Source of the DNA: Epiperipatus broadwayi
Taxonomy: Eukaryota; Animalia; Onychophora
DNA length: 64,000 bases
Assembly: GCA_028023455.1 (NCBI GenBank)
Contig: JAQFVV010000011.1
Location: 1,178,001 to 1,242,000 of the forward strand
Direction of reading: 5' to 3'
The notes beneath the pieces were generated by a model. It searched no databases. It worked only from the letters and a program-made list of their open reading frames with translations, and was not told where the DNA came from. Shown one piece after another: positions 2,645-56,300 of this stretch. Position 1 is the stretch's first letter. Every line of letters starts with the position of its first letter. A program made the translations under genes and the position numbers.

Positions 2645-3210
2645 TCACATGATCATCATTTCTTATGCTTGCTCATGCTGTTAAAACAGGCGAAACTCTC
2701 ATACAGTAGTACTACTCATGCAAGCCAGAGTAATCAGTGGATACAAGAAGATTTGTGGCACTACTGTATGGAGAGTTTTGCCTGTTTTAACAGCTTGAGC
2801 AAGCATGAGAAATGGTGATCATGTAATGCTTAGTGGTTTATTACTAATCCTGCTAATAAGACACCAAAATGTATGGGTACTGAACTGAGTTCAGACCTAT
2901 ATAACTATATAAGTTAATGAGTTTGGATTGAAAATATTATGTTTTCAATTTTAGACTCATAGTTTTGTAGTTAAGTAGAGATAAAAGATGGCTGCTGGAG
3001 GGTTGCATTAGATCCTAAGATCTAGGTGCAGTGCTTTCAGATCCAAAGTTCTTCACTGATAAAAACCATAAGCTATAAACTAGTCTGAGGATATTTGATG
3101 AGTAGGCAGTAGATAGGAATTTTATGCACAAACCTTCTTGCATCCATTGATTACTCTGGCTTGCTCTGAGTGGCACTACTGTATTTGAGAGTTGCCTGTT
3201 TTAATATGAA
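2645..3210 (+). mobile_element. Hammerhead-bearing repeat family B: fold-back 3' end (2645-2826) plus longer copy (2830-3210)
   Basis: ~80-bp inverted arms around gccagagtaatcagtggat; decayed core ctgataa..taaactagtc tgagga at 3056-3091; shared end tggcactactgtat(g)gagagttttgcctgtttt. Confidence 0.65.
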
Positions 3211-4274
3211 GAAATAATGGAACTGTCACTTAAAATATTAATGATGTAATGAAATATGTGGAAGATAAAATTGTACCATAATTATGAACATACATACACA
3301 AAGCAAAAACATTATAAGAGATGATACATATAATTAAATCTATAAAGAAAGGAAGTTCCTGCAAATGATGAAATTATATTGATGTCTTAAAAGAAGCAAG
3401 TAAAAAAAAAATAGAAAAAGTATCGATAAAACTAAATATCAATCTTCTATCCATTCTCTAAAATCTTTACCAAAATAATTACAAATCATCTATAGGGAAA
3501 TTTGGGTTTTAGCCAGCAAAAAGAACGATGGATTTAAATGTGGTTTTAGCAAAGTGGATCACATTCAAGTACTGAGAGAGGTTATGGAAAAAAGCCCCAA
3601 TGAATTCGAATTGCCATTAGGGTTTGGATTTGTATATTATAAAAAGATATTTGATTCTATAAGTACCAACAAGACTTAGATCCAGAATATTATCATAATC
3701 TGAAAAATATCAAAATGTAACACCAGCAATTCGATTATATGGTGACAATTAAAAAAAATTAATATTGAGATGGGTGTATAACAGGATGATCCTATATTTC
3801 CAAAACTTTTTACTGCAGTTTATCAAATGAAAAGCTAAAGAGTAAAAATATGTGAAAATTATTTAAGTCATCTAGATTTTATCGTTGATATTATTGTTTT
3901 TGCAAAAAAAAAAATGCTTCAGAGTTCAGAAAAGTCTGTGCTCATATACCCTACATATTACATATATAGACACAGGTATATAATAAGCCTGTGTGTTTCA
4001 GTTATCAGATAAAAGTAAGAAAGTAGGATTAAAAAAACCAAAGTAATATTCAATGGATTTTCTCAGAAGAAGATAATAAAGATTAATAATTATGAATTTA
4101 AAAAAGTTAATTTCAAAAAACCAGATCAGATTATTAATACTAGTGAAAATACAATGGATGGAATTAATCATAGAATTAAACTTGAATAAAATACTTTTAG
4201 TAGAAATAACTTAATATTAAAAAAATATATACATATATTTTTGAAAAGGAAAGTTTTTAATATATCTGTTTTAC

Positions 4275-4700
4275 ACAGAGGCAACATTCTCCATACAGTA
4301 GCACCATCGGTGAAATCCAGAATAATCAATGGATGTAAGAAGGTGTGTGCATAAAATCCGTCTATTCATCTGATATCCACAGACTAATTTCTAGCTTGTG
4401 GCTTTCATCAGTGAGAAATCTTGGATCTAAGAGCACTGCACCTAGATCTTAGGATCTAATGCAACAAATGGTTTAATAGCAATGCTGTTCAATAGGATTA
4501 TGGTGACTCTAGTTATTAAAGAAATAAAGCCATCAAAAAGTATGGATGTTGAACTGAGTTTGGGTCTATACAACTATACAAGCATGTGAAATTAGCTTAA
4601 AAGCATTATTGTGTTTTATTTTGGACTCAAAGATTTATAGTTAGCTAAAAAAGTAAAAGGTAGTTGCTGGAGGGTTGCATTATATCCTAGGATCTAGGTA
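4275..4700. mobile_element. Family B copies in opposite orientations (minus 4275-4470, truncated plus 4480-4700)
   Basis: Minus strand 4411->4382 reads CTGATGA AAGC CACAA GCTA GAAA TTAG TC; ttaggatctaatgcaac matches the reverse complement of gttgcattagatcctaag at ~3002 and ~4675. Confidence 0.65.
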
Positions 4701-10836: not shown

Positions 10837-11469
10837 TTTTTCACATGTCTTTAGCCATATGTTTATGTTTACATCTCTCTACAAACATATTAAAAGTGGA
10901 TAGAAACCATTCCCTGCCTGGTGTGTGATGGAGGAATGAAAATTACTGTACAGAAATATTATTCATTATTGGATAATTTCTAATATAATGAATAGCTAAT
11001 AGAAAATTATTAATATACTTTCTGATGCCAGATTTTGGTAATTTTGATGTTAAAAATATGCACTGATTTTAAAGTTAATATTACATTGATACTAGTATAA
11101 ATAAACAATAATAACATTTTTTCTATGAATTTTACAATGTTAATGCAATATTTTCTTATTCAACATTTTCAAAAATAGATGATAGTTTCGACCATCTAAC
11201 AATCTTCTTCAGAGAATCATATACTTATTTTGTAATAGTTTATTATTTAATATCAAATAATAGATGTGAATCAAACAAATAATATAAAATAGACATCCGA
11301 TATTTATAAATCAGTATTCAATTTTTGATGCTAGAGGTATTCAATTAAAAAAAAATTAGAGATCCATAGTTTTACCCAAGTTGGAAGATAAGAGCATATT
11401 ACCACTAATAGATGTCTGAATTATGCAGACTATGAAAAACTTGACTTATAAACAATGAAATAGATATCT

Positions 11470-12048
11470 GAAGGTTTGTGATGAAGGTATTCTAGATGTG
11501 ATAATATGTTTGACTATTTCCATCATCTATCATTAAATATTGAATGTCTAGAAAGTTTTAAACTTTATTTATACTTTTACAAATACAAACGACTGCTAGT
11601 AAAACACACACAAGTTAGTAGATAAAGACATATTAGTAGAATACATAGGATAGTAGATTACAATGTTTTGAGTGGTATTATTCTCCACACTTTTTCAGGT
11701 GTTGCTGGCTTGACCAGGGACAATGCTAACATAGGAGTCAAACTTGCATCTTTAGTTTTTTGAATATCAAATTTTAAGACAATGTTCTAACCAATTGAGC
11801 TATTATTTCAAAGGTTTTTGGCAGAATAAATTGTTTGGTTAGAGCATTGTCTTAAAATTGGTTGGAGTGTTATCTTAAAATTCAATATTTTAAGAATATA
11901 AAGGTGTAAGTTTGATTCCTATGTTAGCATTGTCACTGGTCAAGTTAATAATCCTTGATGAAGAGTGAAAAGTAATATCACTTGAAATGTTATGTAATCT
12001 ACTATTCTATATTGTTACTAACCTGTGTTATCTACTAACTTGTGTGTT
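11470..12048. mobile_element. Family C fold-back: two head-to-head copies of a tRNA-head + hammerhead element
   Basis: 11603-11802 is the imperfect reverse complement of ~11835-12048; each arm has A-box-like TAGCTCAATTGG (minus 11802-11791), B-box-like AGTTTGA(C/T)TCC (minus 11744-11734; plus 11909-11919) and a hammerhead-like core ~35 nt downstream (plus ttgatga 11955, gaaa 11984). Confidence 0.65.
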
Positions 12049-12399
12049 ATTATTAAGAGTTGTTTGTATTTGGAAGCTGATGAAAATAATCCAACATATT
12101 TTCACAAATAGAAATGTATCATTTATGGATTAACAATTTAAGCATTAGCAAACTTTAGATGAGAAAGTCATACTATTAATTATTCAAATTATGAGTAACA
12201 GCAAATTGTGTAGCTCTCAATGCAAGAATGTTCTAAGAATGATCATTCAATATAATCTATAAATTTTTGATTGATGTTAGTATGGTTTTGTACACATTTA
12301 ACATTATCAAAGTACAAATCCATGTTCAATAATTCAATCACATGAGAAAGAAATTTAAAATTACTTATATACTGATAAAATTTTGAGACAAGATATATC

Positions 12400-13150
12400 T
12401 TAAATGGTCAATGACAGGAATGTTGAAGAAATGTAAAAAGAAAATGTTATTGGTACATTGTAGATATGGAATCAAAGATGAAATAAAATTATAATTATGT
12501 TTTTGTGAATCCAATGCTCTTTCTTATGAAAATTATATTTTCTGTGTAGTTAAAAATGATCTATATACATGAATTTCAGTAGATGAAGTTTCCTGGCACT
12601 CATATCTAATGATGAATACATTATCAGGAACAGATTATAAATTACTTATCTATATATTTTTAAGTAATTGTGATAAAGAATAATAAACACCTCTGATTCC
12701 TGATATATCTTCTCATTAGAAATTGATGTAATCAATAATGAAACAAATGAACTGCAATCGCAAGAAGAAAAAAATATGAATCTAAAAAAAGTTTGATTAA
12801 AATGAAACAGAAAAACAAAATTTGAAGTAATAAATAAACTTGTCAGAAAATTCAAAGAGTATCTTGGAAAGTCAAGAAACAACACCATAATATTATTTGC
12901 AAAGATATTGAATATGGAAATAAGCCAGGAAAACAAACATTGTCTTTCAAAAGATTCAGCAGATCAAGAGATTCAACCATAAATAGGTTATCTAAAAAAT
13001 AGAAATGGACAGGTCATAACTAAAGAAACAAGCATTGAGCAGAGATTAAAGGAATATAATAAAGAAAATATAAAATCTACACCAAAATATTTTTTTAAAA
13101 AGCCAGGTGTAAAAGAAGAAACATTAGAAATGGAAAACAAACTTAAATTA
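12400..13150 (+). mobile_element. Decayed RTE-like LINE fragment (between APE and RT)
   Basis: IGYLKNRNGQVITKETSIEQRLKEY (~12982-13056) resembles the RTE linker I.D..G..LT...I..RWKEY. Confidence 0.45.
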
Positions 13151-13584
13151 TCTTTGACTGACAAAGTTTGTGCAGAGTGATCCGAAAAGAGGAGCGATTT
13201 AGTTTTATGCCAAATTATATAGTACTCATAGAAAAATAAGTATAAAAGAGTATTTCAACATTGTTAAGAGGTGTTATATGTTGAACTATTTCCATCATTC
13301 AATTGAATTATCAAATGTTTACAGAAAAAAATAAACTTTATTTAACAATTTTCTGAACACCATTAACTTTTGTAATAATACACAGATTATTATAAAACAT
13401 AATGTTTTAGGCATTATTTTTCTTACAATCTTGACAGCCTGAACAATGACATTCTTTCACAGAGATTGATCAGCAATGGTAGATTCACAAAGATTAAATT
13501 TAAGTGATGATCTAATCAGCTAATTCATTCTGCCAATGAAGAATTAACCTAGTTGATTGCACACTGTCTTAAATGTAACTAATC

Positions 13585-13735
13585 TAATTGGTTAGAACAT
13601 CACTTTAAATTCAGTTTTTATGTATCTAAAGTTTACCAGTTTTATCCCTATGTATCAGATGAACAACAGTTGAAGAAGAGAGCAGGACAATATATAAATA
13701 TGACTAAAATACCAACATTACAAAACTTCAGGAAA
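13585..13735 (+). mobile_element. Internally deleted family C copy
   Basis: ctaattggttagaacat head, aacaacagTTGAAGAagag (13670-13676), and 3' end actaaaataccaacattacaaaacttcag matching the reverse complement of 14757-14790. Confidence 0.5.
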
Positions 13736-14089
13736 GCAGACAAAATAATACTTGAAATGCTGAATTCTATATACTTCCGTATGTATTTAGAAAGGCATAT
13801 ATAAAATGTAAATTTAAAAAAAAACCACTTAACAGTTTAATTATAAATTTATTAAATGCACATTGATTATGTAAGTAATATTTACTGAGGCTATAACCTC
13901 AATAATATGCGTATAAAATGCGATAGTAGGGACCTCTACAGGTATTTTAACCACAAGCTTACGCTATGGAAGAAAAGAGGTGAACTAAATGATGGAAAGA
14001 GTCCAATATATAACTACAAGTGACTACCATCATCATAATGCTCAGGAGAACATTCTTAATAGGAGTCTTGATATTGAAGTAGAAATACA

Positions 14090-14245
14090 CAGGGACTAAA
14101 CTCTCCATACAGTAGTGCCACTCAGTGCAAGCCAGAGTAATTAATGGATGCACATTGAGTAGCACTACTGTATGAAGAGTTCAGCCTCTGTGTATATAGC
14201 TTGTATAGGCATAAAGAATGGTGATCATGCAATGTTTAGTGGTTT
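14090..14245. mobile_element. Family B fold-back insertion with 13-bp TSD
   Basis: Arms actctccatacagtagtgcc / gcactactgtatgaagagt; exact flanking repeat aagtagaaataca at 14077-14089 and 14246-14258. Confidence 0.75.
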
Positions 14246-14756
14246 AAGTAGAAATACAATTAAAGTAGGTTAATGTGAAAGATATTCATTTGTATTACAT
14301 ATTCTCACCTTATCTATTCAATATATATTCTGAATATGTATGAGAACAGATCTTTACAAACAAAAATCAAAATTATTCAATCTATAATATTTTTTTGGTG
14401 ATTCTCTAAAAACGTGAAATTTGAACTTATTGATGCTTTTGAATTAATAATAGCAAAGATTTTTGAGGTTACCATATAAAATAAGAAAATGTTACCTCAC
14501 TTGAGGCATAGGTGATCAGATTGGAAATATCATATTTTGGTGTATTAAAGATTGATCTAATTTATTATAAAATTGTAGTTAATCATTGCAACACTGACAA
14601 ATGATGTTGTTTTGATGAAATACTATTCATTTAACTGCCAGAAATCAATATCTTCTAGACATCATACAAATAATAATAGTACTTCTGTGAAATGAGTAGT
14701 GGTAGTTATAGAATACTACTTTTAACACACACACACACATAATATATTCATGTTTT

Positions 14757-15040
14757 TCTGAAGGTTTGTGATGCTGGTATTTTAGTTTTATTTATATATT
14801 GGACTATTTCCATCATTTAATATTAAATATGGAATATTTTTAGAAAAATTAAACTTTATTTAAATTTTCCAATTACATTTAACTGTTAGTAATAGCACAC
14901 AGGTTAGTATATTCACAACGTTTTGAGAGGCATTATTCTCCTGTCTTCTTCAGGTGTTGCTGGCTTGACCAATGACCATAACTTTGGATCCTTAGATTCG
15001 TGAATATTGAATTTTAAGATAACGCTAGTGTACTATAATA
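14757..15040 (-). mobile_element. Family C copy (tRNA-like head remnant + hammerhead + AT-rich tail)
   Basis: Minus: CTGAAGA (14953-14947) A GACAGG-AGAATAATG-CCTCTC AAAA CGTT GTG; 14757-14900 aligns with 11467-11620. Confidence 0.6.
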
Positions 15041-15334
15041 GTGATCTTAAAATAAAAAGTAATGTCAGAATTATCTCATACTGAACTCTTAGCTTCATCT
15101 AAGATATATTTTGCTTCCCTTAAATATTTGTATACCCTTTATATTTAATAATTATTTTGTGAATATGTATAGGCAAATGTCTTAATGAAATTTGGTTTGT
15201 GGTAAATAGCGGTTTATTTTTAACAGATTAATACATTACACATAATACATACTGCTGCCATTTAAAAAAAAGAATAGTGATTAAAAAATGAACTTTTTAA
15301 TATTGTTTGGTTGACTTTATATAAATAGAATATC

Positions 15335-15431
15335 AGTCAAGCGTTGGTGGCCTAATGGTTAGCATAGCTGCCTTCCAAGCAGCAGGTCCAGGTTCGCTTC
15401 CCCGTCAACGCATTTGACATATGGAAAAAAA
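15335..15431 (+). pseudogene. tRNA-Gly(TCC)-derived retrocopy / minimal SINE with A-tail and TSD
   Basis: 15341-15412 GCGTTGGTGG..GCTGC-CT-TCC-AA-GCAGC..GGTTCGCTTCCCCGTCAACGCA; acceptor and anticodon stems intact, T-stem has 2 mismatches and T-loop A58 is lost; trailer tttgacatatgg + A-run; TSD ataaatagaatatc (15321-15334) / ataaataggatacc (15435-15448). Confidence 0.85.
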
Positions 15432-33250: not shown

Positions 33251-35039
33251 TGTTCTGTTTGTTTGTAATGCTAAAATAAAAAAATTCAAAATCGTAACCG
33301 TACTCGGACAGAAGAAAGAAACTCAAACTTTTTTTAAATAACAACAAACACATGTCTTCTTTACTTATTAACATGTTTATAATATTTTCTTTTTATTAAA
33401 TTTACAAAAAAACCAGTATATTTGGACTTTTCTTACTGGATTTTTTTTTCTTACCGCTCTTTTTTACTTCAAAAATATACAGACGGTAGAATCTTCTTTG
33501 TCACGTTACCTAATTGCAACTCAATAAAAACATAAATATTTAATATTTTACCAAATAAAAGTTCACTACAGTACGTTGTAAAAAGTCTTATAATTATTGT
33601 TTTAAAAATTCTGAACATTTCAATAGTTTAAAATAAAAAAAAATCCAATGAAAACAACATTTCAATACAATTCAAATACAAACTCTCTCATCAAGCCGTA
33701 ATTATTTTATAAATTGTGCGAATTCGGAAAATGTATTTGCAGCTATGCGACATACATGCTGTACTGTGATGCAACATAGCAGCCTGCATTCTGTAGCACA
33801 ACAAAAAAGTTGTATTATAGAAAATGCGGGTTCGAACATGTCGGCCGCGGAAACAGCATTTTTTTGTGTTTTGGCACAAAAACCACGCCATTGAGTGGTG
33901 CCTTTAGCTATAAGATGAGTACCTTAATGTTTATTTTAATAACTTAGTATAGTTTCAACAAATTAGTATCATATTTATTGATTATCAACTGATAACAAAT
34001 CGAACATTAAATAACATTTAAAGGACTCTTCTTTTTTTTTATGTGAATAATATTGATTTTCTAATTCTTCACGTATTCATTTTATACTCTTTGACTTTAT
34101 TCTTTCTACCATTTCTTCCTTTGTAAACCACTTCAACAATACCTGGATCATACCAATGTCTATATTTGGTGCAATTTATTTTCATAGTTTTAATAAAAAT
34201 ATAATTTTTTTGATTGTAATACAAACAGGCCACTATAACCTGACCTTGTACTAGATCTCACCAAAACACTCTGCATCAGACCTCTCACAAAAATAAGCCT
34301 ATCATGCAATATAAAGCCATATTAATAAATTATAAGGAAATAGTAATACTTTACCATCTCTATAAAAGATTATATTAAACCTTGCATCACCAAAAAAGAA
34401 CAAAAAGATTTTATTAGAATTGATTATTTAAATAGGAATCTTTGATAACTTGATCAGTTGGTACATTGAATTATCATTGATCAGGGTAGTGATGCTTAAA
34501 GAAAAACAATCTGAAACACTGTGTTCTATACTAACTGAATGCTCATTGATATTCATGAGCTTAAACAGTTACCAATTTAATTTCTGAGCTATACTGTGCT
34601 GTTAAGGCAGAAACACCTGGAGAAATGGATTAAAAAAAACCATCTGAAACTATGTGGTTTATACTAAAATCACATGTATTTAGAGAAATATAAATAAAAT
34701 TTAATTATTAAATAATGTGCCTAAATGTTGGAAATAGTCTAAGATATAAGCATCAGTCAAGATAAATATCATACTTATTATTAACAAATAAAACATAATC
34801 AAAATGACAGATTTCTAAATACATTTAAAAAAGGATAAATATTCTGCAACAAATTTTATATCAATACTTAAAAGAAAATTATTTAAAAAATGTTTACAAA
34901 GTTGCACTTCTATACCTAAAGTCATAAAGATATCAGATGACTATCACGTGATTCCATCATAAACATTTTTATTATTCTTTTTTTTTTTTTTGACCACTTA
35001 ATGTAAGCTTAATAACTAATAAATGCCAGATGATAGTGC

Positions 35040-44645: not shown

Positions 44646-47600
44646 CTTTAAATAAAAATTTATGTGGTAGTATAGATAAGATGAAAGATAAAATCAATTC
44701 AGTAATATGTAAATATGTTATGATGAATAGTTGAATATAGGACTTGTTGAAATTTCATATGCTTCAATGTCTACATATGTTAAGTGTATAAAAATAAAAT
44801 TACAAAACTGATACATAGAACATATTTTTATTATAAAAAACTATGCGAGATGTTTCAACTACTTTAAATAACTATCTTCAGTCTATAAAAATGAAATAAA
44901 AAAATATATACTTTTTACTAAAGGTGAATATTATTTCACTTTTATAAACCTTCAAATTCAAAATAGAAAATCCAATATTTAATATAGCTTTGACAACAAA
45001 TTTATGTTTTGAGACAAATTAGTTTAAAATTATGATATAAAACAAAAAGAAATTATTAGATCATAGTAAAAATCATTTCTCTCCCTATTAAAAAAATATC
45101 AAAATTAATATATACTGAAATAAATAATATTCTATTCATTTCATGGTCAGCCATGTGATCTTTCACATGACAGCAAATTGATTTTCAATGTTGTGATGAG
45201 AATAATAAATATAGCATTCAAAAGCTTTAAAGAAAATATATAAAATAAAACAAATAGCTTAAAATAAAGTATTAAAGATACTAATAATAGGTATATTTTA
45301 ATGTTAACATAAATTATTAAATGTTATATTTTAAAATAATAAATAATAAAATAGATTTGAGAAACTGATAAATTATGTAAACTATGTTAGAACTGTTTCT
45401 ATTATCAAAGATTAAAAGAATGTATGGAATCTATTGAAAAACAACTTAGTTAATTATGCTAGCCTTTTAAGAAATAGATTTAAAATAATTAAATTAAAAA
45501 TAAGTTAATAAAAAAGATTAAGCCTGTTTTGAGATATGAGATTAAAAAAGAAGAGTGCTTTGAAATTCAATCAATTAAATAAAAATGAGAGTATGAGAAT
45601 ATTTTTAAAATTCATGTAATTAAAATAAAATGAGGTCATAAAGATATTAAAAATAAGAGATTATAGGTGTTAAAAACAAGAAATCAAAACCTTTATATAG
45701 TCAATTGACATTGAACTGTCACTAATAATCAAGTTGAGAAAAGAAAAAATGTTGTTTGAAAGTCTAACCTGGATTGCTGTAGGACCTGATTGAGCTATTT
45801 TTGAAGGAATTTATAATCAAAATGAAATACAATGCTTGAACCTCAAATTGGGATGATAGATTATAAAATACATTATAGCAACTTGTAAGAAAAAGAAAAA
45901 TATTATAAATGGAATCAATTAATGGAAGCCATTGTGGGAGAAATAATAATCTGCAAAAACATGCTTACAATGAACTATAGAGAATCCTGCTTCAAAACTT
46001 TTGCTGTGTAAATTAAAAAAAATCTGTTTGTAGATTAATCTGTATACTAATGAATTAACAATTTTGTTTTATTTTATGACCTCTTATAGCATATATTTAA
46101 TTCTAACAAATTATATTTTATTATGTATATTATTTATATACTATTATTTAACTGATTGATTAAAGGAAGAATTGAATGGTTTTTTTTTTATAAAAAAGTA
46201 TTTGTTGCTCTAGCTGCATTTTAGAGCAGCCAAAAATAGTAATTGAAAAAACTACACTTCATCTTGTATATATATATTGTACCAATTGAGGTTCAAACCC
46301 GATACAAGTATAGCCATTTGTAACTGAATAAAATTATCTAGACATTGAGAAAAAGTAAATAATCTAGTATTCCTTTCTATTCAGTGTTTTCTTATATGTA
46401 TATCTGGGAGCCATTAGGCTATTAAACCTAGATAATAGTTACAATATATATGATTTGTTAAAAAACCCTGGTTTTAAAGATTTTCCTTAATGTGTAATTA
46501 TTAGCAAATATGTAAAAATTGTGTATAATCAGAATGTATTACTCATTTTAAATATGCTAAGTGTTCACACTTGTAAAGTCCAAGGGTTAAATAATAAGTG
46601 TGATGTAATTATTAGTATTTTAAGTTAAAGGTTTATTTTGGATTTTGATCGAGTTTATTTGTATATAAATTAGTTCTTCTTTTGATTACTGTTAGATTAT
46701 ATGTATGTAGAACTTATAATTTAAATATAGTTGTTAGATCACTGCTGAGTGGTTAAAATGTTCTATATTTATATGGTGGATTTATTCAGTGTTGTGTGTA
46801 AATTTGGGATCAGATTCAAAGGGCCAACTCAATTAATGAAGTAGTTTTTATTGAATTTAAAATAAGACTCAAAAAAGCTCTCATTGTAATTGAGTTATTT
46901 TAACTGTTAATATATTTTTAAAATATATGATTGAAATTATGTGCTCTATATTTTCTGATGTTTAATGTCAGGTGGCACCCAAATCAATTAAATTAAAATA
47001 AATTTAAACCTATAAAAGCTTTGGTCTTTTTCACATCTTTGATCATATGTTTCAGTAAAGTGTGATGGAATAGAAGTTTGAAATATATTGAGGTGGTATT
47101 TTCTGCCACCACATCAGTAAATATATATTTAATTTTGAGTTAGGTTTAAAGTAGTTTAATTAAAAATATATAACTTTATTTTAATCTTTTAAATCTGTCT
47201 TAAAAGGTTTTTTTCTGATGGCAAAGAAATCATAATTTCTTCATTTTAATTCTTTATCTAACAAAATCAAGATTAAAATCTCAATGTTTTTGCTAAAATT
47301 TCTTTTGTGTGTTAATTAAATTGTAATTCTTGGAATAATGTGGGTTGGGGGTGGGATAAAAATTAGTTTGTGCAATTAACTCTATTGTTGAAGCTACAGA
47401 TACTAAAAATATTTGTAATTAGATTTATCACTAGAGTTGATCTATTACAGTAATTAAACAAGAATGTTTCCACTGATTAAAAGAAAAGTAAATGACCAAA
47501 AAAGGATAAAATTTGGAAGTGTAGAGATGTATCTAAAAATAAACCAATAAGTGTGAAAACTATTGTCAACAAAATGTATAAATTGTGGACTTTTCTTTTG

Positions 47601-48998: not shown

Positions 48999-49062
48999 TG
49001 AGGAGTTAAACCACTAAACATCACATAATCACTATCTCTTATACTAGCACATAATTGTTAAT

Positions 49063-49150
49063 AAACGAGACAAAACTCTTCATACATCCATTGATTACTC
49101 TGATTGGCACATGGTGGCAATACTGTATGGAGAGTTTTGCCTTGTTTAAT
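49063..49150. mobile_element. Short family B fold-back
   Basis: aaaactcttcatac / gtatggagagttttgcc arms around catccattgattactctg. Confidence 0.6.
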
Positions 49151-52728: not shown

Positions 52729-52915
52729 AAAACAGGAAAAACTCACTATACGTATTGCCACACATAGCAAGTTAGAGTAATCAATGGATGCCAGAAGGCT
52801 TGTGCATAAAATCCCCATGTAGTGCATACTCATCCAATATCTCCAGACTAGTTTCTGGCTTGTAATCTTCTTCAGTGAGGAGCCCTGGATCTGAGAGCAC
52901 TGTGAAGTTTATTAG
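52729..52915 (-). mobile_element. Family B hammerhead element with 13-bp TSD
   Basis: Exact TSD caatatcttaatt (52716-52728 / 52916-52928); minus cctcaCTGAAGA..GAAACTAGTCtggag (52875->52846). Confidence 0.8.
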
Positions 52916-54306: not shown

Positions 54307-55437
54307 AGAAAGATATCAAAAGCAAATTACATAGATGAGAAAGCAAACTGGCATAATTAGAGGAATTAAAAAACTGAAATGAAATTGAACTGGATATTTA
54401 GTTAGAAGGGATGACAATGGATAGGTGATTGATACTTTAAACTGGTTCCCAAAAGTTTATATGAAATGAATGGAAAAAATAAGGTTTGCTTGAGTTTAAG
54501 GAAGACTAAATTAGAAAGACTAGATTAAAATGAAGAATCCTTCATTCTGAAGAGGATTGAAAATGGTTGAAAATTATGATATAGAATTATTAAAATTAAA
54601 AATGAAGTATATGTATGCCAAATAAATGCATCCACAAACAGATCTTAAGTGAAAAGTTGTGAAATTGATTTTTAATTTTACTTGGATGTGCAGTTAATTA
54701 AAAACTGAATTAATAAATAACGATGATAGTAATAAAAATGGATATATGTACTATTTTATTCTTATTAAAATGAAATTTAAACCAAGAATATTACGATACT
54801 GTTTATAAATAATGTGAAATATTAAACTTAATAGTTTTTGTTTTAAAATATTAGTTTAAAAAAAATTACATTGTGGGGTGTTTAAAGTTATTGTATTCAT
54901 TATTCCAATCCAAACTGATACATTAAAAATGTCTCTAATTCTATTTAATGAAAACCACTTGAGGGGATAAATGAAATTGAACCCTAGCACATTAGCTAGT
55001 GATCAGATTTATTAAGCCGAAAATATTTAATGGAGATAGCGGGAAAATTACATTAAAACATTTCATTGACTTAGAGGGATCGTTCTCTTTTCGCAAAATA
55101 TCAAATCAAAACTCAGCCACAACAATAAATGAATTTGCGCTGTACCTGTGTTTTTTTTTTACTATTTTAAAAACTAAAAATAGAAATGACAAATAAAATA
55201 AACTATTATAGTTTATTATTTATACTTTTAATATACCGTAATTACTTCCTAGTGAGTAAATAATTTCATAAATCTTAAAAACAAGCCAGAAAAAAACTAT
55301 TCAGCAGCTATTTAGTCTTTTACCAGATACATTACTGAGATTAGTTGATCCACAACTAAATGAGATTTTTATAAAATCTTTTGTAAACAATGGACACTAG
55401 ATGGCAGTGGTGTACCCAAATCTTAATAAAATAAAGA

Positions 55438-56300
55438 TTTTTTTTTTCTCAAAACATTTATTAAACTAATTAATATGGATGATATATTACAAATATGGAT
55501 AATGAACAATTATAATATTAGATGAGTTATGGAACTAACATTATTGAGTTAAACAGGGTTAGGTATTTAGTGGTTAAGTTCTTTGTTAACTTTATTAGAG
55601 AGTCTGATATAGCTTCCATGTCTCTTGAAAAATGAATGTTGTGGCAAGAGTTTTGTCTCTTTGTTTAATTTTCTCTATGCTCTGAATAAATAATGAGTTT
55701 TCATCTGGCTTGGGATGTTGGTATTGTGCCTTGCATCTTACAATCCAAATGGCATAGGTGATGAAAATTGACAGCCTGATTGTAGGAATATCTCTTCCAC
55801 GAATGCATTTCTTTTATATTAAGTATTTTGTAGTAGTCTATCTTTGAATTGTTAAATATTATTGTTTTAATATTACCTAGACCCATGCATGTTTTAATTA
55901 TGTGGTCAAATGTTTCCTCATCCCTGCCACAGCTGTGGCAAATTGATTGGACTTTGGTGCTAGATCTTTTATATCTGAGGAACCAGTTGACCGGCATGGC
56001 ATCCAGATTAATTTTAAGTAAGTAATCTAAGTATTTTGGTTCTAGAGCCCAATACTTGAATAGGGTAATCAGCTTGTGATTAGTTATTCCTAATCTTGTA
56101 GTAGAGATTTGATTATTTTGTTTTAGGATGTGATGGGCATCCCATAGCTTGATCTTGCTTTGATAGTTGTTATGGGCATTTTGTTGCATTGTTGACAGGA
56201 TTAGATGGTCAAGCCAGCTTAATTTTTTGGGGGGTGGGGTGTCGGTAGGAATTATGGATTCAGTGATTTTTATTATTGAAGTTAACACATTATTCATTTA
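55438..56300 (-). mobile_element. 5'-truncated L1/Tx1-type LINE 3' end with poly(A) tail
   Basis: 198-aa ORF with KINLDAMP..CHSCGRDEETFDHIIKTC (CCHC); AATAAA (55462-55457) then A-tail (T-run 55438-55447). Confidence 0.8.

Follow-up and report, generated by a model that had tools for sequence, protein, structure and literature searches.

A 64,000-nucleotide stretch of the genome of the onychophoran Epiperipatus broadwayi (assembly GCA_028023455.1, contig JAQFVV010000011.1, positions 1,178,001 to 1,242,000; hereafter the window, numbered from its first nucleotide) contains a cluster of repeats at 11461-15035 called, together with their relatives, family C. We consider it reasonably probable that family C is a non-autonomous retroelement resembling a short interspersed nuclear element (SINE), made of a tRNA-derived head and a 3' part similar to the one in Penelope-like elements (PLEs), and copied by PLE machinery. 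The copies carry a motif with the published hallmarks of PLE minimal hammerhead ribozymes, four of them are arranged as two head-to-head pairs with outward tails, and the 5' ends of these four coincide within about 3 nt.

Results

Family C copies combine a tRNA-like head, a hammerhead-like motif and a tail

The extents of the copies were determined with a profile hidden Markov model built from the local copies and used in an nhmmer search of the 64-kb window. Besides five near-complete copies (c1-c5) in 11461-15035, the search identified a 60-nt fragment of the tail and, at 34.5 kb, a composite relative; no further family C match in the window passed it. In the unit, which is about 320-350 nt long, an A box/D-arm and a B box are followed by a minimal hammerhead and a tail rich in A. 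Copy c1 (11461-11813, minus strand; E=3e-83) is full length, covering profile positions 2-317. Copy c2 (11817-12123, plus strand; E=2e-53) has a head duplication of ~23 nt and a tail deletion of ~50 nt. Copy c5 (13236-13538, minus strand; E=1.2e-65) is near full length (profile positions 2-314) and heavily decayed, with deletions in the hammerhead motif. Copy c3 (13537-13737, plus strand) was recovered by nhmmer as two segments (13581-13692 and 13688-13737), its 5' end being placed by alignment; its head is duplicated, and it has lost an internal segment that extends from the stem II loop up to the final ~50 nt of the tail. Copy c4 (14753-15035, minus strand; profile positions 18-315, E=7e-72) is without the first ~17 nt and lacks the 5' end and the A box. 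Another ~15 nt are deleted from it at the B box, and a (CA)n run follows ~20 nt past its 3' end.

The copies are 19-25% diverged. The 21-mer GGTCAAGCCAGCAACACCTGA occurred twice and a 23-mer from the A box once, with one mismatch, against 0 expected in both cases. Among the ten longest open reading frames (ORFs) of the window, none in or beside the copies had a Pfam match, and the local copies are dead relics. The initial annotation had listed four of the five copies, and sequence, repeat and profile searches confirmed these at the positions and strands it gave; it had missed c5, the tail fragment and the composite relative, and c2 proved longer than described. The motif order that it had proposed was recovered in full, from A box, B box and ~35 nt of spacer through CUGANGA, an extra A, a 6-bp stem II and (G/A)AAAC to a tail with AATAAA.

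The tail-only fragment (13981-14042, plus strand; profile positions 244-306, E=1.2e-5) is either a 5'-truncated copy or a tail module fused to another repeat. The composite relative (34440-34754, plus strand; nhmmer segments 34470-34536 and 34547-34754) is a diverged partial tandem, in which the start of a head leads to the 3' end of a hammerhead and 15 nt of its tail, and then to a second segment running from mid-head through the hammerhead to the tail. This arrangement is reminiscent of a pseudo-long terminal repeat (pseudo-LTR)-like partial duplication. Weak BLAST matches to the tail at 2002, 7116, 16660 and 17917 failed the profile search and were discarded.

Two head-to-head pairs share a common 5' end

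Four of the five copies form two inverted pairs, with heads facing and tails outward in both. In the first, c1 is the left arm (minus) and c2 the right arm (plus), meeting head to head about an axis at 11814-11816, with inverted arms of 43 nt lying 4 nt apart. In the second, c5 (left, minus) and c3 (right, plus) meet at 13536-13538. The pairs are not duplicates of one another: their arms are 74-77% identical, which does not exceed the identity of unrelated copies. Other genomic copies also showed a recurrent inverted junction of heads (contig joint 15022>11858) when the contigs of one DNA run from the same organism were placed on 11440-15080 at 80% likeness. Rfam matches to microRNA families at 11765-11866 were rejected as an artefact of the inverted c1/c2 junction. 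A 13-nt piece at 15041-15053 (plus strand), 15 nt past the 5' end of c4, is inverted relative to the c4 head and is possibly a short inverted junction, although the indication is weak.

In all four paired copies the 5' end falls within ~3 nt of TTTGGCAGAAT, just before TAGCTC. This fixed end, ~10 nt before TAGCTC, corresponds to tRNA position +1, the point at which transcription would start from a type 2 RNA polymerase III (Pol III) promoter. In L1 twin priming the arms do not overlap and are not two complete copies. Tandem and inverted insertions, with the inverted copy adjacent at the 5' end, are a hallmark of PLEs (PMC8557442), and the family C twins show this Penelope-style insertion footprint.

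The head carries tRNA-type A and B boxes

The head begins near the common 5' end and includes TAGCTCAATTGGTTAGAGCA, a perfect tRNA-type D-arm with U8, A14, G18, G19 and A21, which is followed by a degenerate middle part. In c1, the A box TAGCTCAATTGG (11791-11802, minus strand) opens the D-arm, whose stem is of the GCTC/GAGC type with GAAC as the closing strand in this copy, and a B-box/T-loop-like sequence, AGTTTGACTCC (11734-11744, minus strand), lies 58 nt from the A-box start. The B box in family C reads AGTTTGA(C/T)TCC, the two boxes have the order and spacing found in tRNAs, and the TTTGA of the B box would fit a TTCGA that has undergone CpG decay. The ~35 nt separating the B box from the hammerhead motif include a CUGG/CCAG hairpin. 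These features suggest that the 5' part of family C is tRNA-derived, most likely serving as an internal Pol III promoter, a reading based on the fact that full-length copies start a few bases before the equivalent of tRNA +1.

In both plus arms, c2 and c3, the segment with the D-arm and anticodon is duplicated in tandem (11835-11886 and 13537-13616). The duplications are unequal in length and the minus arms of the pairs have none; they could be a by-product of the junction or mark a subfamily with a dimeric head.

The hammerhead-like motif has the hallmarks of PLE minimal hammerheads

The motif downstream of the head can be read as a type I hammerhead, with a CAC/GUG helix I, the C3-A9 segment CUGAAGA, an unpaired A, a 6-bp helix II with a 9-nt loop, (G/A)AA, and a 3' part made of A15.1-C-G-U16.1 and U17 before the predicted cut. 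Helix III is absent, and in its place stands the self-complementary ACGU, which could pair two family C molecules. In minimal hammerheads of the PLE type, an unpaired nucleotide separates A9 from 10.1, 10.1 and 11.1 form a G-C pair, helix II is long, at 6-8 bp, helix I is short, helix III is absent and 15.2-16.2 is palindromic (PMC4209133). All these hallmarks are present in family C, in agreement with the Penelope-type identity given in the initial annotation. Such hammerheads have low activity in vitro, and minimal PLE variants escape standard descriptors (PMC4209133).

The c4 motif (14914-14956, minus strand) reads CAC, CUGAAGA, A, GACAGG, a 9-nt loop, CCUCUC, AAAA, CGUU and GUG, with the predicted cleavage site between 14917 and 14916; its defects are a C.C mismatch in stem II and A12. 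In c1 (11659-11701, minus strand) stem II has a U.U mismatch, position 12 is A and CA replaces the C15.2-G16.2 CpG. In c2 (11955-11994, plus strand) stem II is fully paired (GAGUGA/UCACUU), with an A-U loop-closing pair versus G-C in the other copies, and GAAAU is present with the CpG decayed to TG. The 34.5-kb relative has an AUGG/CCAU stem II, retains GAAAC and has CUGGAGA as its core. CUGANGA is intact in c4; substitutions break it in c1 (G8>A), in c2 (C3>U) and in the relative (A6>G). The extra A after CUGAAGA is found in all copies. Stem II starts with a G-C pair in c1 and c4 and with G-U in c2. The palindrome is AACGUU in c4, while in c1, c2 and c5 it has decayed to CA or TG. As the initial annotation had stated, no local copy is free of a core or stem defect: c1, c2 and c4 have substitutions or mismatches, and c3 and c5 have deletions.

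Several of these defects are mended in the genomic majority. Majority letters that differ from the window, which cover the 40 best supported places and have shares down to about 42%, restored G8 in c1-like genomic copies (11693) and converted the stem II mismatches from U.U to A-U in c1 (11689) and from C.C to G-C in c4 (14943). The resulting sequences define two subfamilies, a c1-like one with GAGUGG/CCACUC and a c4-like one with GAGAGG/CCUCUC, which differ by a double transversion that retains the pair. The pair in question, the fourth of stem II, reads U-A in c1 and c2 and A-U in c4, and c3 has the same 5'-side A as c4.

A descriptor scan requiring a perfect stem II and allowing at most 1 core mismatch returned 5 matches in the window versus 1.1 in shuffles, and c2 was the only family C copy to pass. 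CUGAAGA and GAAA are both intact in three minimal-hammerhead-like motifs outside family C, at 11186-11212 (minus strand), 44853-44881 (minus strand) and 54547-54572 (plus strand). They have one extra nucleotide and wobble-rich stems of 5-6 bp, and could be relics of other families or chance matches.

G12 is apparently lost from most copies in CpG-depleted DNA

The window is animal DNA with a G+C content of ~28%. Its CpG observed/expected ratio is 0.40 and TG and CA are over-represented, a combination that points to methylation-driven CpG decay. Such decay bears on any repeat consensus derived from this genome. Position 12 of the hammerhead core is A in c1, c4 and c5 (AAAA), G12 being kept only in c2 and the 34.5-kb relative. 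The dinucleotide holding G12 reads CA, TG, CA, TA and TG in the five copies. This pattern is the signature of a lost CpG; the founder very probably had CG here, with an intact G12, and its core as a whole was probably intact. Two letters of the consensus built by eye for the initial annotation, the G in GAAAC and the C in the B-box TTCGA, are likewise back-inferences from CpG decay and are not the observed majority.

G12 is the general base of the hammerhead, and a G12A mutant was reportedly used by Chi and colleagues in 2008 to slow catalysis. As most copies apparently carry A12, most should be catalytically inactive, and most genomic hammerhead cores are probably dead. The description of family C as self-cleaving in the initial annotation holds at best for the founder; it does not extend to c1, c4 and c5 or, apparently, to most genomic copies.

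Family C is abundant genome-wide

The DNA run contributed 106,742 contigs to 11440-15080. Summed contig depths, which are not copy numbers, were ~31 for single contigs on the unique flanks, 0.13-0.5 million on the head and hammerhead motif and 1.2-3.3 million on the final ~110 nt of the tail. Family C clearly runs to many thousands of copies, which bears out the initial annotation's picture of a short, non-coding, very high-copy dispersed retroelement. The similar genome-wide depths of head and hammerhead are consistent with its further claim that the two are co-linear. The tail is ~10 times more abundant than the head; this excess could come from 5' truncation, from a more conserved or shared tail, or from recruitment of low-complexity sequence.

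The tail itself is ~190 nt long, contains AATAAA and a conserved AAATAAAG, and ends in CTTCAG without poly(A) or a simple repeat. A tail common to family C and the repeat at 13758-13985 was considered and rejected for want of proof: no second copy of this stretch lies in the window, and a poly(A) run may account for some of its contig depth. In the public collections scanned, a 25-mer from the hammerhead had 0 matches. The tail 19-mer GATGATGGAAATAGTCCAA was found exactly in 20 metagenome contigs (L001-L020), none of them with a family C BLAST match at E<1e-5, and in 0 viral contigs; the metagenome matches are due to chance or to an unrelated conserved gene.

The tail excess would also be accounted for if the copies were 3' ends or solo pseudo-LTRs of an autonomous PLE with a tRNA-like segment upstream of its hammerhead, that is, ordinary truncated insertions. 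Hammerhead type and inverted layout are both known from PLEs and agree with such an origin, yet we regard it as unlikely. Four arms end within ~3 nt of each other at tRNA +1, which is not expected from random 5' truncation of an element of several kilobases; head and hammerhead have similar depths; and no remnant of a reverse transcriptase (RT) or GIY-YIG domain was found beside any copy.

Neighbouring features

A foldback repeat at 14085-14195, separate from family C, has 43-nt arms that are 86% complementary and a summed contig depth of up to 3.4 million. Further copies lie at 2640-2840, 3139-3193, 4272-4335, 49006-49148 and 52732-52791. It looks like a miniature inverted-repeat transposable element, and its weak Rfam matches to microRNA families arise only because it forms a hairpin.

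A tRNA-Gly(TCC) gene was identified by ARAGORN and Rfam (33.2 bits) at 15341-15412 (plus strand), ~300 nt from c4. Five family C copies lie within 4 kb on one side of this gene, versus one locus in the other 60 kb. This cluster could reflect an insertion hot spot by a Pol III gene, or chance.

A 198-aa ORF at 55701-56297 (minus strand) matches zf-RVT weakly, at an E of 0.0033 that falls short of the Pfam cut-off, and may be the remnant of an element bearing a reverse transcriptase.

Discussion

How family C may be copied

The tRNA-derived head would direct Pol III transcription from about tRNA +1. The 3' two-thirds of the element resemble the PLE 3' region, the pseudo-LTR, in having a minimal type I hammerhead motif and a tail of ~190 nt without poly(A). 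PLE reverse transcriptase and GIY-YIG endonuclease would probably act on this tail and copy the RNA into the genome. Their action on the tail would explain the head-to-head twins with tails pointing outward. We infer the PLE partner from two things, the type of hammerhead motif and the insertion footprint.

The promoter lies 5' and the tail 3' of the predicted cleavage site, and both are present in every inserted copy. Because inserted copies span the site, the templates must have been uncut RNA. Uncut templates and A12 lineages together argue against cleavage as a step in the productive cycle of family C. Most likely, the hammerhead motif would be a passenger, or a structural or recognition part of a 3' module borrowed from a PLE. 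In a more specific proposal, which we hold to be quite improbable, the minimal hammerhead would be an RNA-RNA pairing and recognition module and not a nuclease: ACGU would join two SINE RNAs, and the Penelope machinery would copy both, each from one side of a staggered break. Such pairing would explain the full-length head-to-head twins and the amplification of dead A12 lineages.

Evidence against a PLE-dependent SINE

Several results weigh against our interpretation of family C as a tRNA-headed SINE copied by PLE machinery. Concerning the partner, no PLE gene or domain was found in the 64-kb window in a Pfam search of its ten longest ORFs, and the copies, whose flanks were read by eye only, are too old for recognisable target-site duplications. 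Concerning transcription, a conserved run of T4-T5 ~95 nt before the 3' end would stop Pol III there; the run is T5 in c4 and majority-letter c4, T4 in majority-letter c1 and T7 in c5, and T runs are otherwise rare on the sense strand (c4 has 1 T run versus 7 A runs). Only one small run, with a guessed RNA label, is available, and its head-to-tail contigs are indistinguishable from low-coverage DNA.

The head itself was claimed by the initial annotation to be of tRNA type. The A box/D-arm and the B box/T-loop in the right order speak for this claim, but neither Rfam nor ARAGORN recognised it: the Rfam tRNA model scored no family C copy, even in a 351-nt search at E<=10, and ARAGORN found no tRNA at the 80% threshold in the window, the heads or the majority-letter head, returning only doubtful calls at ps60.

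As for the hammerhead, helix I has 3 bp only, and RNAcofold favours other dimer pairings over the 4-bp ACGU helix. The stem II pair counts of the four local sequences are not significant, with 32-72 of 500 shuffles reaching the observed values. No Rfam hammerhead family matched the copies at the gathering threshold or at E<=10, whether the 64-kb window, 6 kb or 351 nt was searched. Among the 40 best supported places there is no majority G at 11669 or 14924, and the CpG of the neighbouring ACGU is likewise unflagged in the c4-like set; we infer that large lineages descend from sources that were already A12.

The missing Rfam match is what one would expect of an ordinary tRNA-derived SINE moved by a long interspersed nuclear element (LINE), whose hammerhead-like stretch is decayed or a product of chance and which has no link to PLEs. 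No local copy has an unbroken core, and the same is probably true of most genomic ones; the loose core pattern is hardly enriched in the window (11 matches versus 5.6 expected), and one weak zf-RVT ORF is present (55701-56297). We nevertheless find this explanation distinctly unlikely. The motif unites five independent features of PLE-type hammerheads, majority letters mend local stem and core defects, and stem II has compensatory pairs. The 3' end has neither poly(A) nor a simple repeat, and twins with two complete outward tails do not follow the L1 twin-priming pattern.

The partial tandem at 34.5 kb, with a hammerhead 3' end and the start of a tail followed by mid-head, raises a further alternative. 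Family C could be a non-LTR retrozyme, transcribed by RNA polymerase II as a tandem array from which dimeric hammerheads cut monomers that are circularised and copied back, the dispersed monomers being by-products. Retrozymes have been proposed as PLE dependants (PMC7229834; bioRxiv 10.64898/2026.07.22.740005). This origin is nonetheless very unlikely: each of the five copies is a single unit that starts with the head and has a fixed 5' and a fixed 3' end, and none belongs to a head-to-tail array or is circularly permuted at the cleavage site. No tRNA-like head is known from the retrozymes described to date, and canonical retrozyme hammerheads retain helix III and loop-loop contacts.

Significance

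For the window alone, decayed repeat copies are an ordinary finding. The wider interest of family C is that it bears on how PLEs choose their templates and make tandem and inverted insertions (PMC8557442), and on the role of the weak PLE minimal hammerheads (PMC4209133). A very high-copy dependant of ~330 nt with a fixed tRNA-type 5' end, a PLE-type hammerhead module and full-length twins would be a far more tractable substrate than an autonomous element of 3-4 kb. If the partner is confirmed, a SINE-PLE pair would stand beside the classic SINE-LINE pairs, and ribozyme catalysis would appear to be dispensable for propagation.

Comparison with known systems

In the literature searched, there was no description of a tRNA-headed SINE with a PLE-type minimal hammerhead. 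A tRNA-headed hammerhead SINE is not new in principle, the closest precedent being Sm-alpha of schistosomes, with Sj-alpha. Sm-alpha is described as a tRNA-derived SINE with a hammerhead, a head called as tRNA-Gln by tRNAscan and >10,000 copies (PMC2770079, PMC6765202). Like family C, Sm-alpha and Sj-alpha (Schistosoma; Ferbeyre et al. 1998; Laha et al. 2000) are described in these sources as ~330 nt long, very high-copy and dispersed. Their tRNA-derived head is taken as a Pol III promoter, they have a type I hammerhead internally, and the cleavage site separates the promoter from the 3' part. Unlike that of family C, the Sm-alpha hammerhead is, on the same accounts, canonical, found by Rfam-type searches and able to cleave in vitro. 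Family C has instead a PLE-type minimal motif, in which helix III is absent, one more nucleotide follows A9 and helix II measures 6 bp; it is missed by Rfam and ARAGORN, most of its cores are apparently dead and it forms inverted twin insertions.

Metazoan non-LTR retrozymes (PMC7229834; bioRxiv 10.64898/2026.07.22.740005) are, like family C, non-coding and non-autonomous, carry a hammerhead and are thought to depend on PLEs. They differ in their tandem repeats, canonical type I hammerheads and circular RNAs, and no tRNA head has been reported for them, whereas family C is dispersed, head-first and inserted uncut. Non-autonomous Chlamys elements, for example MRC1 (PMC8557442), are also short and non-coding, and are dependants of a PLE clade. 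They share their 3' end with the autonomous element and form pseudo-LTRs or complex insertions (PMC8557442), whereas a 3' likeness between family C and its partner is only presumed; the Chlamys dependants are algal and have neither a tRNA head nor a hammerhead.

The minimal hammerheads of PLE pseudo-LTRs (Cervera and de la Pena 2014, PMC4209133; Lunse et al. 2017) have the core and helix hallmarks found in family C, and like it they occur in very high copy number and in sequence families (PMC4209133). They reside in the repeat flanking an RT-endonuclease gene, whereas the family C motif stands behind a tRNA-like head in a non-coding unit of ~330 nt, with A12 apparently replacing G12 in most copies.

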